Of a stretch of 32,000 nucleotides of DNA, positions 3,039 through 27,160 are shown in pieces. The translations under genes and the position numbers were made by a program. The DNA comes from Paramicrosporidium saccamoebae KSL3. Taxonomy: Eukaryota > Fungi > Cryptomycota. How positions within the stretch are numbered: the stretch's first letter is position 1; each line of letters begins with the position of its first letter. The notes below the pieces were generated by a model. The model saw nothing but the letters and a program-made list of their open reading frames with translations, searched no databases and had not been told where the DNA came from. The stretch lies in NCBI GenBank assembly GCA_002794465.1, contig MTSL01000178.1:22015-54014 (forward strand), written 5' to 3'.

Positions 3039-3863
3039 TTATTTACGATGCTTTGATTTCTTGACGTTGGAGGAATCAATACAACGATCAGTCCAGTTGC
3101 TCTTCTTTAGTTTGACTGGTCGACTACCAATATACTTTCCTACTCATCATCACCTCATGAACCAAACATACCATTCATTTCCCGGATTGCTGCAAGAAAG
3201 TCCTGTGGCTCCTTGAATCCAACAAATCCATAGCCTTTGGACTTGTTCGACTTTCGGTCCCGTATAATTCGGTATTTGGTCAGCGAGCCGAATCGGGAAA
3301 AGGCCTGTTGCAACATCATGTCCGTCACCTCTGGTCCCAAATCGCCCACAAATATCCGGAAATCATCTACAGATAAGACGACAGGAGGGACAAATACTTG
3401 GATCCCAGTCAGCAAGAGTTGGATCCTGCCATACCTCGCCAGCAGCCGCCCTCAAAGTGTGAGCCGGTGCGGTGGGTGGCTTTGCCGAGCAAACGGTAGC
3501 TGCTGTGGTTGTGTCCTTGGTCAAGTCCTTGGCTGGATCTTTCACTGAAGGTGTCATAATAAATGCAGGCCGTTTAAGTGTGTTGGTCTTTGCGGTACTG
3601 CTTCCAGGAATGGAGCCCACCACTGTACTGCCGGTAGAGCCTATTACCGTACGACTGACTTGAGGAATAGACCCGATTGTTGCACCACTAGTACGGGAAA
3701 TAGAGCCGGTTGTTGCGCCACTAGTATGGGGAACAGAACCGATGGTTGTGCCACTGGCACGGGGAACGGCGCCCACTACTGTGCTACTGACTTGTACTTT
3801 GCGCGGTGCCTGTCCAATAGGCAACTGACCGATGGGCTGTTGTTTCGATGGTCTCTGCTCCAT
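3039..3863 (-). CDS. RBM42: RBM42-like RRM splicing factor (U4/U6.U5 tri-snRNP associated), 253 aa, 3 exons (3863-3398, 3366-3172, 3139-3039)
   Basis: Spliced product reads [33 protein letters not shown]...[10 protein letters not shown]...[20 protein letters not shown], which is diagnostic of RBM42. Introns 3397-3367 (31 nt) and 3171-3140 (32 nt). Start codon is less certain. Confidence 0.9.
3601..3794 (-). repeat. 33-nt (11-aa) coding tandem repeat in the RBM42 N-terminus
   Basis: Four full units (3649-3681, 3682-3714, 3715-3747, 3748-3780) plus partial flanking units, encoding [44 protein letters not shown]. Confidence 0.85.
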
Positions 3864-18587: not shown

Positions 18588-21147
18588 ATGCAGGCAGTAC
18601 CACTCAAGAAAAGCCTTCCCGTCTCATTCAAGGCACTTGGTACCTATATCGAGACTGGACATCACCAGGACCCGGAAGAGTATGAGGTGGAGCTGAAGAA
18701 GCTCGATGACTTGAGACAGGCAGCCATCAACGCAGTGCCCAGCGCAGAAGGTCTGGCTCGACTTGCCGAGTATCACGGACAGCTCTCAAAGCTCTCCACG
18801 CGGTTTCCAATAGGGGAGGATGGGATAAAGATTGCCTTTTCATGGTTCAACTTTGCAGGCAAGGAAAAGAAGCCAAGTATGTGACTTTTTAATTTTTCTC
18901 ACACTACATTATAGTTGCCTCGCATGAACTGAAATTTGAAGAAGCCTCCATCATAGTAAATATTGGGGCCACGTATAGCCAAATGGCTGCTCAGGAGAGC
19001 TATGGCTCCGTTGATGGTCTCAAACGTGCATATAACAACTTTTTGAATGCTGCGGGTGCCTTTGAATCGGCGGGTCGTTGTGCTTCGGGCGCGCCGATCC
19101 CTACCACTGACCTTTGCGAGTCGTCCATTTCCTGTCTTGTCGCCATGATGCTTGCTCAAGCACAAGAATGTTTCGTACAAAAGGCGATTCTCGAAAAAGC
19201 TGTCAAGGACACGACTCTGGCCAAACTGGCCATGTCCACGTCTGCGTTTTTCGAGTCTGCAAAATCCCACGTTTCCAAGAACAGTGCAACCGGAATGTTT
19301 GCAAATTATGTCGACTGGCTGGCCGGTAAAGCGGCTCTATATCGGGGCATTGCTCATTACCGCAAATCGACCGAGTGTCTCGTGGCATCGCAATATGGAA
19401 GAGAGATTGTCAAGTTGCAAGAAGCCGACGAAGCAGTAAGGGATGCCAAAGAATTGATCAAAAGACTTCCATCAGAGTTGAGTAACCAAATTACCGCCCT
19501 TGCTGTGTCGGTTACAAAGAATCTTGAACGCGCGCTAAAAGATAACTCGCTGATTTACAATGATCCCCTTCCTGCTCGAGGTGCATGGGGCGATTGTGGT
19601 GCTGCAGTTATTGTCAAAGCCACAGCTTTTCCTGATGCAGCAATCAGCTCCTATACAACGGCGCCGTGTCTATTTGAACGACTGCCAGTCATTCATGTCA
19701 GTAGAATACTGAATTCGCTTGCTGTGACCCGTGACCAAATTGTGTCTGAGCAACTTGTTCGTCTAGATGCCGCTGTATCCACTCTCGAGGGCGCGTTTAC
19801 TAAGCATCAGCTTCCAGGTGTTGTTCATTCTGTGCTCTCTCCAGAGGGACTTCCAGAGGCTTTGATCGCACAATCAGATGAGATTCGTGAAAAAGGCGGA
19901 TTTACTGCATTAGAAGAGATTCGCGAAAAGGTGCAAAATTTGCGTACAGACTGCTCAAAGATTGTCAATGCAACCACTTGCACGCTTGATGACGAAGAGG
20001 CACAGGACAACAACAACCGACAACGATATGGTCCCCAATGGACACGGGCGCTTTCATCGCAGCTCAACAAGATGCTTCGTGGTCGATTAGACGAGCTAAG
20101 GATGACCTTGAAACAGGGCGAGGCTGCCGATGCCAGTTTCATTGAGATATATAATGAGCATATTCCCTCAATCATCAGTCTATCTCTTTCAAAGGAAGAT
20201 TTGGAAGATGCTGTTCCTGCTTCAAGCTCCCGTAACCTGGGCATACCGGCAGCGGTGGTTGGGGAAATTACCGCAGCTATTGAACGGAAAGATCATCTCA
20301 TTGGATGTAGAAACAGTCTTGGAGAAGAACTGGGAAGTGCCATTGGGTCTGTAGATATTGTTGCGCGTGCTTTAGAGTTGGATGGAGAATCCGACATCGA
20401 AGCAGTGATCAGCAAAGAACTAAGGGATGCAGCAGAGTCCATCGGACCCAAACTAGACCGACTTGACAGTGACATTGCCGAATATCTGCGATTTTTGGAG
20501 CGCCTGATGGCAGATTTCTACGAAAGCTGTCCCAAGATCCAAACGTCAATGGATGAGCGCGGAGTTGCCTTCCAGCGGCTAAATGAAGCATACAATGCCT
20601 ACTTGGCCTTGATGCCCCAACTTGGTGCCGGCCAGCAGTTTTACACCGATTTACTGGAACAGCTACGCTCGCTTCAACAGGTCTGTGCCGATTTTGCACA
20701 AAATCGGCTTGGGGAGCTTCAAGAAATGTCCAGGTAATTTAGAAGCCGATATATTTACTGTGTAGGAATCTGGACAATGCTGCTGCTTCCCACTACGGAC
20801 AACAATCGGCTCCCATGTATGGTCAGCCGCCGGCGTTTGGTGGACAACCTTTGCCAATGTACAGTCAGCAACCCTCAGCTGCACAATACCCAACTCAACA
20901 GCCGCCTGTACCTGGTGCATGGAACCCTTCCATCCCGGTACGATATGGTGCACCACAGAACGTGTCGCCGGCATCTTATGGTGCGCCTGATCAAGGGAAT
21001 CCCTACCCAGTAGTATATCCATCAGGAGCACATCAACCAGGAGCATATCCGCCTGGAACGTACCCACCGGGAGCATACCCACCTGGAGCATATCCGCCTA
21101 ACAACGGACCCTTTGGTTATCAGAACCCGTATTATCGACCACAATAA
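18588..21147 (+). CDS. BRO1: BRO1-domain ESCRT adaptor (ALIX/Bro1/PalA family) with V domain and proline-rich tail, about 829 aa, 3 exons (18588-18876, 18915-20733, 20766-21147)
   Basis: AVPLKKS, LDDLRQ, I.F.W, FEEASIIVNIGATYSQMA, MLAQAQECF, A..DN.LIY and the V-domain RYGPQWTR..S; Pro/Tyr/Gln-rich tail. Introns 18877-18914 (38 nt) and 20734-20765 (32 nt). The Bro1 versus PalA/Rim20 assignment is not resolved, and the 5' end may have an extra exon. Confidence 0.88.
21025..21099 (+). repeat. 5 x 15-nt coding repeat (GAHQP/GAYPP/GTYPP/GAYPP/GAYPP) in the BRO1 tail
   Basis: ggagcacatcaacca ggagcatatccgcct ggaacgtacccaccg ggagcatacccacct ggagcatatccgcct. Confidence 0.85.
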
Positions 21148-22874: not shown

Positions 22875-22946
22875 GGAACTTAAAGATAAGAAACAGATTT
22901 CCAATCGCATGACACTGCATATGAAACGAAACTTTATTAAGCACAT

Positions 22947-23456
22947 CTAGATGAGGAGACGATCAAGCTGGGTCCTGATGGCGAGAATCTGCGGCTTCAG
23001 CTCGCTTCCCTCGTTGGCAGTGACGGAGCAGGCCACAACAGGTCGTGACACACCGCAAGCACGGCCGAGCGCCACCTTGGATGGCACAAACACATACGGC
23101 ACATTCTTGTCCTCGCACAAAAGCGGCAAGTGCAGAAGAATCTCAATTGGCTCAGTATCGGCAGCCATAACGATAAACTCGGCAATACCGCGGTTCAGGG
23201 TCTTTGTTGCTACACCATTATTACATCATAGAGCATCTCATACCTTCGTTGGCACCCTTACGGAGCTGCTTGTAATGCGAGGCCTGTTGGACAAGGTCGA
23301 GGAGGGAGTTGCTCATGGCCGAGTCGGCAAGGGGGAAGGCTTTGGGGTTGGGTGTGGAGGAGGTCTACAAAGGGGGGAGAGGAGGGCACCGGATGCACCA
23401 GAGACCATCCTTCTCCGTGCCCATTAGCATCATTCCAGGAAAGGTGGGCATACCAT
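22947..23456 (-). CDS. SNU13: Snu13/15.5K/NHP2L1 kink-turn-binding protein (U4/U6 and box C/D snoRNP), 128 aa, 3 exons (23456-23454 ATG only, 23364-23244, 23209-22947)
   Basis: Spliced product M|[40 protein letters not shown]|[57 protein letters not shown]. Intron 1 is 23453-23365 (89 nt) and intron 2 is 23243-23210 (34 nt). Confidence 0.95.
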
Positions 23457-23501
23457 ATCCAGGTCAGTGAAGCGCGTCGAGCTTTTTCACCCCTGGTCAG
23501 C
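23424..23501 (-). promoter_or_regulatory. Predicted box C/D-type kink-turn formed between the SNU13 5' UTR and intron 1 (cis-regulatory RNA element)
   Basis: 5'UTR G-CUGA-CCAGGGG (23501-23490) pairs with intron UU-CCUGG-AAU-GA-UGC (23441-23427). This gives a 7-bp C-stem, a 3-nt bulge ending in U, tandem G.A/A.G, U.U, G-C and C-G pairs. Paired by hand, not with a folding program. Confidence 0.7.
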
Positions 23502-23529
23502 AAGGACCAGGCAATATAGGTCCTACGAT

Positions 23530-26793: not shown

Positions 26794-27160
26794 ATGAACA
26801 TAAAAGATTACTATTTTGGTCGGTCACTATGCTAGTGTGAGGCTTAAGCATTAAACACTGGTGGATGAAAAGTTCATATTTCAGCACTTGTGGATGACAA
26901 GGCCACATTTCGGCACCTGTGAACGACAGAACCATGCTTTGGCGCTTGTGGATGACAAAGCCATAGTCCGGCACCTGTGGACGATAAGGCTATATTTCAA
27001 CACTTGTGGACAACAAAGCTACGTTTCAACACTTGTGGATGACAAAGCAACACCATCGTTCAATGAACATAAAAGATTACTATTTTGGTCGATCACTAAC
27101 TATGCTAGCATTCCCTTTAAATAAAGTATTCAGCACTTGTGGACGACAAAGCCGCATCGT
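26794..27160. repeat. Non-coding 29-bp tandem array (7 units, 26849-27051) inside a direct duplication of the 3' end of the neighbouring gene
   Basis: Units start at 26849, 26878, 26907, 26936, 26965, 26994 and 27023 (consensus about ATTTCRRCACYTGTGGAYGACAAAGCYAY); an eighth copy lies at 27127-27155. The 42/46-nt direct repeats ATGAACATAAAAGATTACTATTTTGGTCG.TCACT..ATGCTAG are at 26794-26835 and 27063-27108. Confidence 0.92.

Follow-up and report, generated by a model that had tools for sequence, protein, structure and literature searches.

A candidate Snu13-binding kink-turn split between the 5' leader and the first intron of SNU13 in Paramicrosporidium saccamoebae

Introduction

Can a gene for a kink-turn-binding protein carry, in its own precursor RNA, the motif that its product recognizes, and could that motif act on splicing? 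The question is raised by the SNU13 gene in a 32,000-nucleotide (nt) stretch of the genome of the fungus Paramicrosporidium saccamoebae KSL3 (contig MTSL01000178.1, positions 22,015 to 54,014), which we refer to as the window. An earlier reading of this sequence, here called the original prediction, had proposed that the SNU13 pre-mRNA folds a textbook box C/D kink-turn across its 5' splice site and branch point. Snu13 is common to the U4 small nuclear ribonucleoprotein (snRNP), the small nucleolar ribonucleoproteins of the box C/D class (snoRNPs) and U3, and its free level therefore couples splicing capacity to ribosome production. No description of how the free concentration of Snu13 is set was found in the open literature searched, from which the phrases "SNU13 mRNA" and "SNU13 pre-mRNA" were also absent. 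The original prediction had allowed that kink-turn feedback on SNU13 might already be known from animals; no report of a kink-turn in any SNU13 transcript was found in the open literature, subscription journals lying outside this coverage.

We analyzed the anatomy of the site, its rarity, its predicted folding and the corresponding regions of other SNU13 genes. On the sequence evidence we lean, with some reserve, towards a functional sensor: a split kink-turn that would bind Snu13 and give Rpl30-like negative feedback on SNU13 splicing.

Results

The SNU13 leader and intron 1 contain the two strands of a candidate box C/D-type kink-turn

The site is composed of the following elements, given in positions of the window:

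23501-23490, minus strand: non-bulged strand G C U G A C C A G G G G, in the 5' leader
23500-23497, minus strand: box D, CUGA, in the 5' leader
23441-23427, minus strand: bulged strand UUCCUGG-AAU-GA-UGC, within intron 1
23433-23427, minus strand: box C-like AUGAUGC, in intron 1, agreeing with RUGAUGA at 6/7 positions

Direct reading of the minus strand confirmed every base that the original prediction had assigned to a stem pair, to the bulge and to the G.A, U.U and G-C positions. The C stem joins 23496-23492 with 23435-23439 through five Watson-Crick pairs and is extended by G23491.U23440 and G23490.U23441. Next to it lies a candidate 3-nt bulge, A23434 A23433 U23432, with U as its third base (L3); AAU-GA is also the bulge of U4. 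The potential sheared pairs G23431.A23497 and A23430.G23498, which are a matter of sequence compatibility only, are followed by U23429.U23499 and then by G23428-C23500 and C23427-G23501, the non-canonical (NC) stem. The U-ended 3-nt bulge, the tandem G.A/A.G and the Watson-Crick C stem are the features by which a box C/D-class kink-turn is recognized, and a third non-Watson-Crick pair, U.U, followed by two Watson-Crick pairs is what has been described for helix II (PMC1874613). The two boxes stand in the permuted order that had been proposed, CUGA coming first.

Snu13p was found by in vitro selection (systematic evolution of ligands by exponential enrichment, SELEX) to prefer UGAU, U at bulge position 3, and U.U atop the G.A pairs (PMC1874613). 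The split motif agrees with this preference in its UGAU, its U at L3, its U.U pair and its two Watson-Crick NC pairs. It is found in sense orientation at the 5' end of SNU13, the one gene whose product binds such motifs, and its placement in the transcript of its putative regulator would correspond to that of the L7Ae-family autoregulatory motifs.

Other assignments of the same boxes were considered and rejected. An intronic box C/D small nucleolar RNA (snoRNA) would need the opposite order: box D precedes box C here, and no CUGA was found downstream of the box C-like motif in the intron. Neither CUGA of the region has an RUGAUGA upstream of it, and no guide was found. A search of Rfam gave no match at gathering score for the site, the best weak match reaching 14.9 bits against a threshold of 90. 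A kink-turn assembled from CCAGG-GGU-GA and a second CUGA was also discarded, because it has no working NC stem and is surpassed by a plain helix. For human box C/D RNAs, a GAC context at the 1n adenine is reported to allow N6-methylation that blocks 15.5K binding (PMC5579392). In the window a C follows each of the two CUGA boxes, so that the 1n adenine stands in GAC (23497-23495 and 23464-23462, minus strand).

The motif spans the start codon, the donor and the branch site of a one-codon first exon

The SNU13 gene was modeled as three exons:

23456-23454, minus strand: start codon AUG, the entire coding part of exon 1
23453-23365, minus strand: intron 1, 89 nt, GUAUGC...UUUGUAG
23453-23448, minus strand: GUAUGC donor of intron 1
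23432-23430, minus strand: in-frame UGA of the box C-like motif, a stop only if intron 1 is retained
23429-23423, minus strand: UGCUAAU branch-site consensus of intron 1, with its CTAAT core at 23427-23423
23364-23244, minus strand: exon 2
23243-23210, minus strand: intron 2, 34 nt
23209-22947, minus strand: exon 3, including the stop codon

The predicted product is a Snu13 of 128 amino acids (aa) with 82-88% identity to the Snu13 proteins of chytrids, Basidiobolus, Umbelopsis and other fungi. The conserved Snu13 N-terminus is encoded in exon 2, which an in-frame TAG immediately precedes and which itself lacks a start codon; the one-codon exon 1 is thereby forced. Intron 1 is about twice as long as the other introns predicted in the window (31-49 nt; 12853-12823, 3171-3140, 21482-21451, 18877-18914, 23243-23210 and 22167-22119). 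Its only match to CTRAY (CURAY) is the CTAAT at 23427-23423, and some 59 nt separate the branch A from the 3' splice site.

The C stem would close a loop of 48 nt (23489-23442), within which both the AUG and the GUAUGC donor are located, as the original prediction had stated. It had also placed the NC stem over the only branch-site consensus of the intron, and the first three nucleotides of UGCUAAU (U23429, G23428 and C23427) indeed double as NC-stem nucleotides. Retention of intron 1 would bring the UGA of box C into frame, which we verified codon by codon (ATG GTA TGC CCA CCT TTC CTG GAA TGA, M V C P P F L E stop). A hairpin in the 3' half of intron 1 was rejected as no better than shuffled sequence (z = -1.1). 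UGAUG as a general intron signal was looked for as well; it occurs in 3 of about 8 predicted introns of the window, which are too few to decide.

A phase-0 intron directly after the SNU13 ATG was also seen in Umbelopsis (L091), Rhizopus (L092), a Mortierella-like locus (L043) and the animal loci L069 (coral) and L053. The SNU13 ATG|intron junction may be an old intron position.

Snu13-specific features make the site rare

Both strands of the window (64 kb of strand) were searched with a strict scan that required CUGA and RUGAUG, a C stem of at least 5 pairs and a span of at most 150 nt, in either strand order. The SNU13 site was the sole C/D pairing recovered. Dinucleotide shuffles under the same scan gave an expectation of 0.36 sites per window, and of 0.073 when 7 or more C-stem pairs were required. 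By a loose kink-turn definition the window holds 76 candidates, so that a generic resemblance to a kink-turn means little.

For a local estimate, the 165 nt that run from the upstream stop codon through intron 1 (23529-23365) were shuffled 20,000 times. Any generic kink-turn (C stem at least 5, NC stem at least 2) appeared in 7.1% of the shuffles, a generic kink-turn with U at L3 in 2.9%, one with U.U in addition in 0.38%, and one that also had a C stem of at least 7 pairs in 0.07%. The site owes its rarity to features that Snu13p selects in SELEX (PMC1874613).

Another C/D-like pairing, 3151/3089 (minus strand), was rejected as a snoRNA: it joins a 32-nt intron to the next exon of a gene for an RRM protein. 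In this region (3089-3171, minus strand), GGUGAUGAUGA of the intron pairs loosely with a CUGA of the next exon and mimics boxes C and D.

Kink-turn-like elements recur in ascomycete and animal SNU13 leaders

A scan of 80 metagenomic SNU13 loci revealed two recurrent elements in the 5' leader, each of which reads as a kink-turn:

Ascomycete type, 12 loci: 5'-(helix)-C-GA-GC...loop 3-51 nt...GC-A(A/G)(G/U)-GA-A-(helix)-3', 4-60 nt upstream of the SNU13 AUG (L022, 2408-2462; L009, L015, L018/L020, L021, L023, L033, L040, L052, L055 and L066)
Animal type, 11 loci: hairpin CCUC-NGU-GA-A-GC...GC-N-GA-GAGG in the 5' untranslated region (UTR) of SNU13 (L065, 60-94, coral-like cDNA; L069, 45-79, genomic; L017, L024, L026, L029, L031, L035, L053, L056 and L060)

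At 7/12 loci of the ascomycete type, Snu13 is identical to that of S. cerevisiae (the case of L022, where the element reads AUUCGAG-C-GA-GC...GC-AAG-GA-A-CUUGAAU), Brettanomyces bruxellensis, Candida parapsilosis, Hanseniaspora, Sungouiella intermedia, Geotrichum candidum or Tuber melanosporum. The outer helix of this element covaries, with 7/8 pairs changing on both sides and a score that was reached in 0/500 shuffles. As read from its sequence, the element would be a kink-turn with the non-bulged strand 5', which is the strand order of the window site.

Among the animal-type loci, the Snu13 of one shares 93% identity with the Acropora protein, and that of another groups with beetle proteins. 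The hairpin ends 5 and 22 nt before the AUG|GU junction at two genomic loci (L053 and L069). In a contig of a vertebrate transcript that lacks its 5' end (L094, 25-41), the 3' half, GCCGAGAGG, is preserved, 19 nt ahead of the AUG. The animal element is almost invariant, which makes covariation uninformative, and would read as a kink-turn with A.C at 3b.3n. Rfam contains no family for either leader element.

Together, the ascomycete and animal elements lend independent support to the notion that SNU13 transcripts bear putative kink-turns. The window site is a sequence member of neither the animal nor the ascomycete element: it reads C-U-GA-CC / GG-AAU-GA-U-G with the bulged strand in the intron, and has only the strand order in common with the ascomycete one.

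Two further hairpins were seen in this survey. Upstream of the SNU13 of a eukaryote (L010, 550-588) lies a third kink-turn-like form, UGUCU-CGU-GA-C-(9-bp helix)-C-GA-AGACA. About 20-40 nt upstream of another SNU13 match (L014), GCGC-AGU-GA-A-CC...GG-C-GA-GCGC combines the ascomycete core with the opposite strand order.

Predicted folding, transcript boundary and conservation

The observations of this section concern whether the two strands meet in a real transcript and whether relatives keep them, and those on folding, on the transcript start and on conservation weigh against a functional sensor. They involve three additional features:

23534-23529, minus strand: AATAAA, overlapping the stop codon of the upstream ArfGAP/ankyrin open reading frame (ORF)
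23511-23505 / 23498-23492, minus strand: competing hairpin CCUGGUC/GACCAGG, hiding the G-A of box D
23467-23459, minus strand: second exact CUGACCUGG, 11 nt from the AUG

Folding with RNAfold, which the original prediction had named as a check, did not return the kink-turn: neither the minimum-free-energy nor the centroid folds ever use its pairing, and other hairpins are favored. The word "textbook" is apt for the sequence and not for the predicted fold. The minimum-free-energy folds use competing hairpins, among them CCUGGUC/GACCAGG. When the RNA starts at 23501, CCAGG (23496-23492) instead prefers CCUGG at 23463-23459. The competing 5' hairpins are also made first in transcription. Imposing the kink-turn pairing costs 8-12 kcal/mol, about what Snu13 binding could pay, in an energy model that takes account of neither kink-turn tertiary pairs nor protein. 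Kink-turns of the box C/D class are reported to stay unfolded in metal ions and to fold once L7Ae is added (PMC5689011). With folding that depends on protein and an energy model that does not credit it, the result fits a protein-driven switch; it fits equally a kink-turn that never forms.

Four CCWGG sequences fall within 77 nt (23435-23511; at 23435, 23459, 23492 and 23507), the densest cluster in the window, and exact CTGACCWGG occurs in the window only at 23500-23492 and 23467-23459. These repeats could be alternative pairing partners, or the cluster could consist of DNA-level sites that give the C stem incidentally. The second CUGACCUGG could pair with CCAGG in an alternative hairpin. It could also stand in, less well, for box D opposite the intronic strand, in which case the C stem would contain a U.U mismatch and the NC stem one Watson-Crick pair.

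The main weakness of the finding is the transcription start. The upstream ORF, of 607 aa and ArfGAP/ankyrin type, ends with a stop codon at 23532-23530 (minus strand) that lies inside the AATAAA, and only 73 nt separate this stop from the SNU13 AUG. With the upstream stop codon and AATAAA just 28 nt away, G23501, the first nucleotide of the box D strand, lies where one would expect the upstream mRNA to be cleaved, and box D may escape transcription. The position of the AATAAA shows that there is little room for a SNU13 promoter upstream of 23501. A TATA-like TATATT (23518-23513) predicts a start near 23488, downstream of box D, whereas an AATAAAT motif predicts one near 23504, which would include box D.

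Conservation was sought in early-diverging fungi, as the original prediction had proposed for covariation. No comparable motif was found at 10 SNU13 loci (Rozella, Geranomyces, Entophlyctis, Thoreauomyces, Spizellomyces, Umbelopsis, Rhizopus, a Mortierella-like fungus and two Basidiobolus), of which three, Umbelopsis, Rhizopus and the Mortierella-like locus, have the ATG|intron junction. No close relative was present in the collections searched, and the metagenome scan returned nothing above 82% Snu13 identity. A strict C/D scan of 86 SNU13 loci found none near any 5' end, and loose kink-turn scans of 83 loci gave equal sense and antisense counts, so that counting alone is uninformative. In addition, the core of the window site (U.U, with G-C at -1b.-1n) is unlike the conserved core of the ascomycete and animal elements (A.C and C-G).

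In B. ranarum (L088, 1225-1375), a strict C/D-type pairing of CCUGACUGUUG with CAGUAGGAUGAUGG was observed at -274/-130 upstream of SNU13, bracketing a possible GTACGT...ACTAAT...CAG intron. It was rejected as a counterpart because it is absent from B. meristosporus, in which only the proximal 110 nt align. That this motif is not kept in a congener indicates that such motifs arise by chance. A shared sequence of another kind, GTGACTGCT(A/T)AAA, was noted in Umbelopsis (L091, ~1395-1410) and Rhizopus (L092, ~1410-1425), 80-100 nt upstream of SNU13.

Compact layout of the surrounding genes

The SNU13 junction is one of three tandem gene junctions in the window with spacers of 67-76 nt. ATAAA-like signals stand at or just after the stop codon at several other gene junctions of the window (e.g., 22933-22938), and neighboring transcripts probably overlap or share signals. 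No near homologue of the upstream 607-aa ORF was found in the collections searched. Elsewhere in the window, a tandem repeat at 26856-27048 (period 29, 6.7 copies, 72% matches) occupies a region without a long ORF.

Discussion

Proposed mechanism

The anatomy of the site, the binding rules of Snu13p and the recurrence of kink-turn-like elements in other SNU13 leaders make a regulatory role plausible. From them we infer that the box D strand is transcribed, that Snu13 binds the motif, and that splicing of intron 1 responds; the block at U2 and the fate of the RNA in nonsense-mediated decay (NMD) are proposed by analogy with Rpl30. The naked pre-mRNA would rest in other hairpins. Free Snu13, when in excess, would capture and stabilize the kink-turn between leader and intron, and the C stem would lock the AUG and the 5' splice site into the 48-nt loop. 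The NC stem together with bound Snu13 would bury the first three nucleotides of UGCUAAU, and recognition of the branch site by BBP and U2 would fail. RNA that retains intron 1 would meet a stop after 8 codons and would be unproductive, possibly a target of NMD. The bulged strand is removed by splicing, so control of this kind would act on the pre-mRNA only and leave the spliced mRNA immune.

Alternative explanations

An unlikely explanation, although the one that we take most seriously among the alternatives, is chance: the two strands would resemble a kink-turn, the RNA would never fold in this way, and Snu13 would not act on it. Generic pairings are indeed common, as the 76 loose candidates and the 7% of local shuffles demonstrate; sense equals antisense in the loose scans; the comparably strict B. 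ranarum motif is not conserved in its congener; the C/D-like 3151/3089 pairing is merely the intron and exon of an RRM gene; and the minimum-free-energy folds ignore the pairing. However, the Snu13-specific features cut the local rate to 0.07-0.4%, and the match lies on the right strand of the right gene, where it overlaps at one and the same time with AUG, donor, branch site and in-frame stop. A coincidence would also have to accommodate the kink-turn-like elements in the SNU13 leaders of two other large clades.

The kink-turn might instead be a by-product, with the CCWGG/CUGACCWGG repeats serving a DNA-level SNU13 promoter or the CCUGGUC/GACCAGG hairpin marking the 3' end of the upstream gene. 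The density of the four CCWGG, the confinement of the exact CTGACCWGG pair to this place, and the position of the hairpin, 18-37 nt beyond the AATAAA of the upstream gene, at a distance at which one expects cleavage, all agree with this, and intergenic spacers of about 75 nt mean that signals must overlap. We nevertheless regard it as improbable: it leaves unexplained why CUGA stands directly 5' of CCAGG and why AAUGAUGC, with a matching U.U and two G-C pairs, stands directly 3' of the intronic CCUGG. One CCWGG sits inside the intron, and there is no hairpin of this kind after the AATAAA of SNU13 itself. We give still less credence to a kink-turn that is real and bound by Snu13 yet has a role other than splicing repression, such as keeping the RNA in the nucleus, protecting its 5' end, chaperoning the intron fold or serving as a snoRNP-type landing pad. 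The ascomycete and animal elements lie wholly in the 5'UTR of the mature mRNA, so that splicing control is not the general mode, and a preprint describes 15.5K-bound intronic K-loop RNAs that affect excision of the host intron. In the window, by contrast, the intronic position of the bulged strand means that only the pre-mRNA bears the motif, and the branch-site overlap and in-frame stop fit repression best.

A possible homeostat of opisthokont SNU13 genes

A wider and more tentative suggestion, which we hold with less than even confidence, is that kink-turn feedback on SNU13 is an old, widespread and repeatedly rewired opisthokont homeostat. It might exist in three forms: the animal 5'UTR hairpin, the strand-permuted and covarying ascomycete 5'UTR element, and the split exon/intron element of box C/D type, a division that we offer with similar caution. 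In the compact genome of this fungus the second strand may have moved into intron 1 and so shifted control to splicing, although we would not yet wager on that step.

If true, a kink-turn in its own transcript would be a simple sensor of Snu13 and would extend the Rpl30/L7Ae principle to a member of the family that serves the spliceosome and snoRNPs. The split exon/intron version would then show how a sensor shifts from translational to splicing control. The S. cerevisiae-type and animal leader elements make the idea directly testable in yeast and cell lines.

Comparison with known systems

The RPL30 motif, studied by Vilardell and Warner and by Macias et al. in 2008, is reportedly made by the 5' leader/exon 1 together with the first part of the intron, and the block to splicing is said to fall at U2 recruitment. 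Rpl30 is reported to bind a kink-turn in its own L30 pre-mRNA and in the mature mRNA (PMC3706390; PMC5539422). The likeness to the window site lies in an L7Ae-family protein and a kink-turn in its own transcript. In contrast to Rpl30, the protein of the window is Snu13, which is not ribosomal, and the motif is of the box C/D type (CUGA/UGAUG, U.U); a strand of the Rpl30 motif lies on the 5' splice site, whereas the bulged strand of the window motif lies on the branch site. RPL30-type translational control would be impossible here, since the spliced mRNA would lose the putative motif.

In archaea, the mRNA for L7Ae, the direct homologue of Snu13, has a kink-turn in its 5' leader through which L7Ae acts back on this message (PMC5539422) and which needs the protein to fold (PMC5539422; PMC6298567). 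Feedback through a kink-turn in the protein's own message would be common to both. The archaeal control is translational and local, within the leader, whereas the window motif is split between exon and intron and would act on splicing. In human NOP56/SNORD86, a C/D motif in the pre-mRNA of a core protein senses the box C/D proteins and shifts splice-site use towards an unproductive RNA (PMC8162545). Here too the proposed sensor is a C/D motif in the pre-mRNA of a core-protein gene; however, NOP56/SNORD86 assembles a complete intronic snoRNA, while the window has neither snoRNA nor guide and the proposed sensor is Snu13 alone.

The U4 5' stem-loop and the box C/D snoRNA sites resemble the window site in their U-ended 3-nt bulge and tandem G.A/A.G, and the U.U pair is that of the C/D boxes. 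They differ from it in that the strands in the window are 48 nt apart and in permuted order, with a C stem closed by a loop, in an mRNA precursor. The ascomycete and animal SNU13 elements belong to the same gene and the same 5' location as the window site, and the ascomycete form also has the same strand order; both of their strands lie in the leader, whereas the window site has an intronic bulged strand, a long C stem and a short NC stem.

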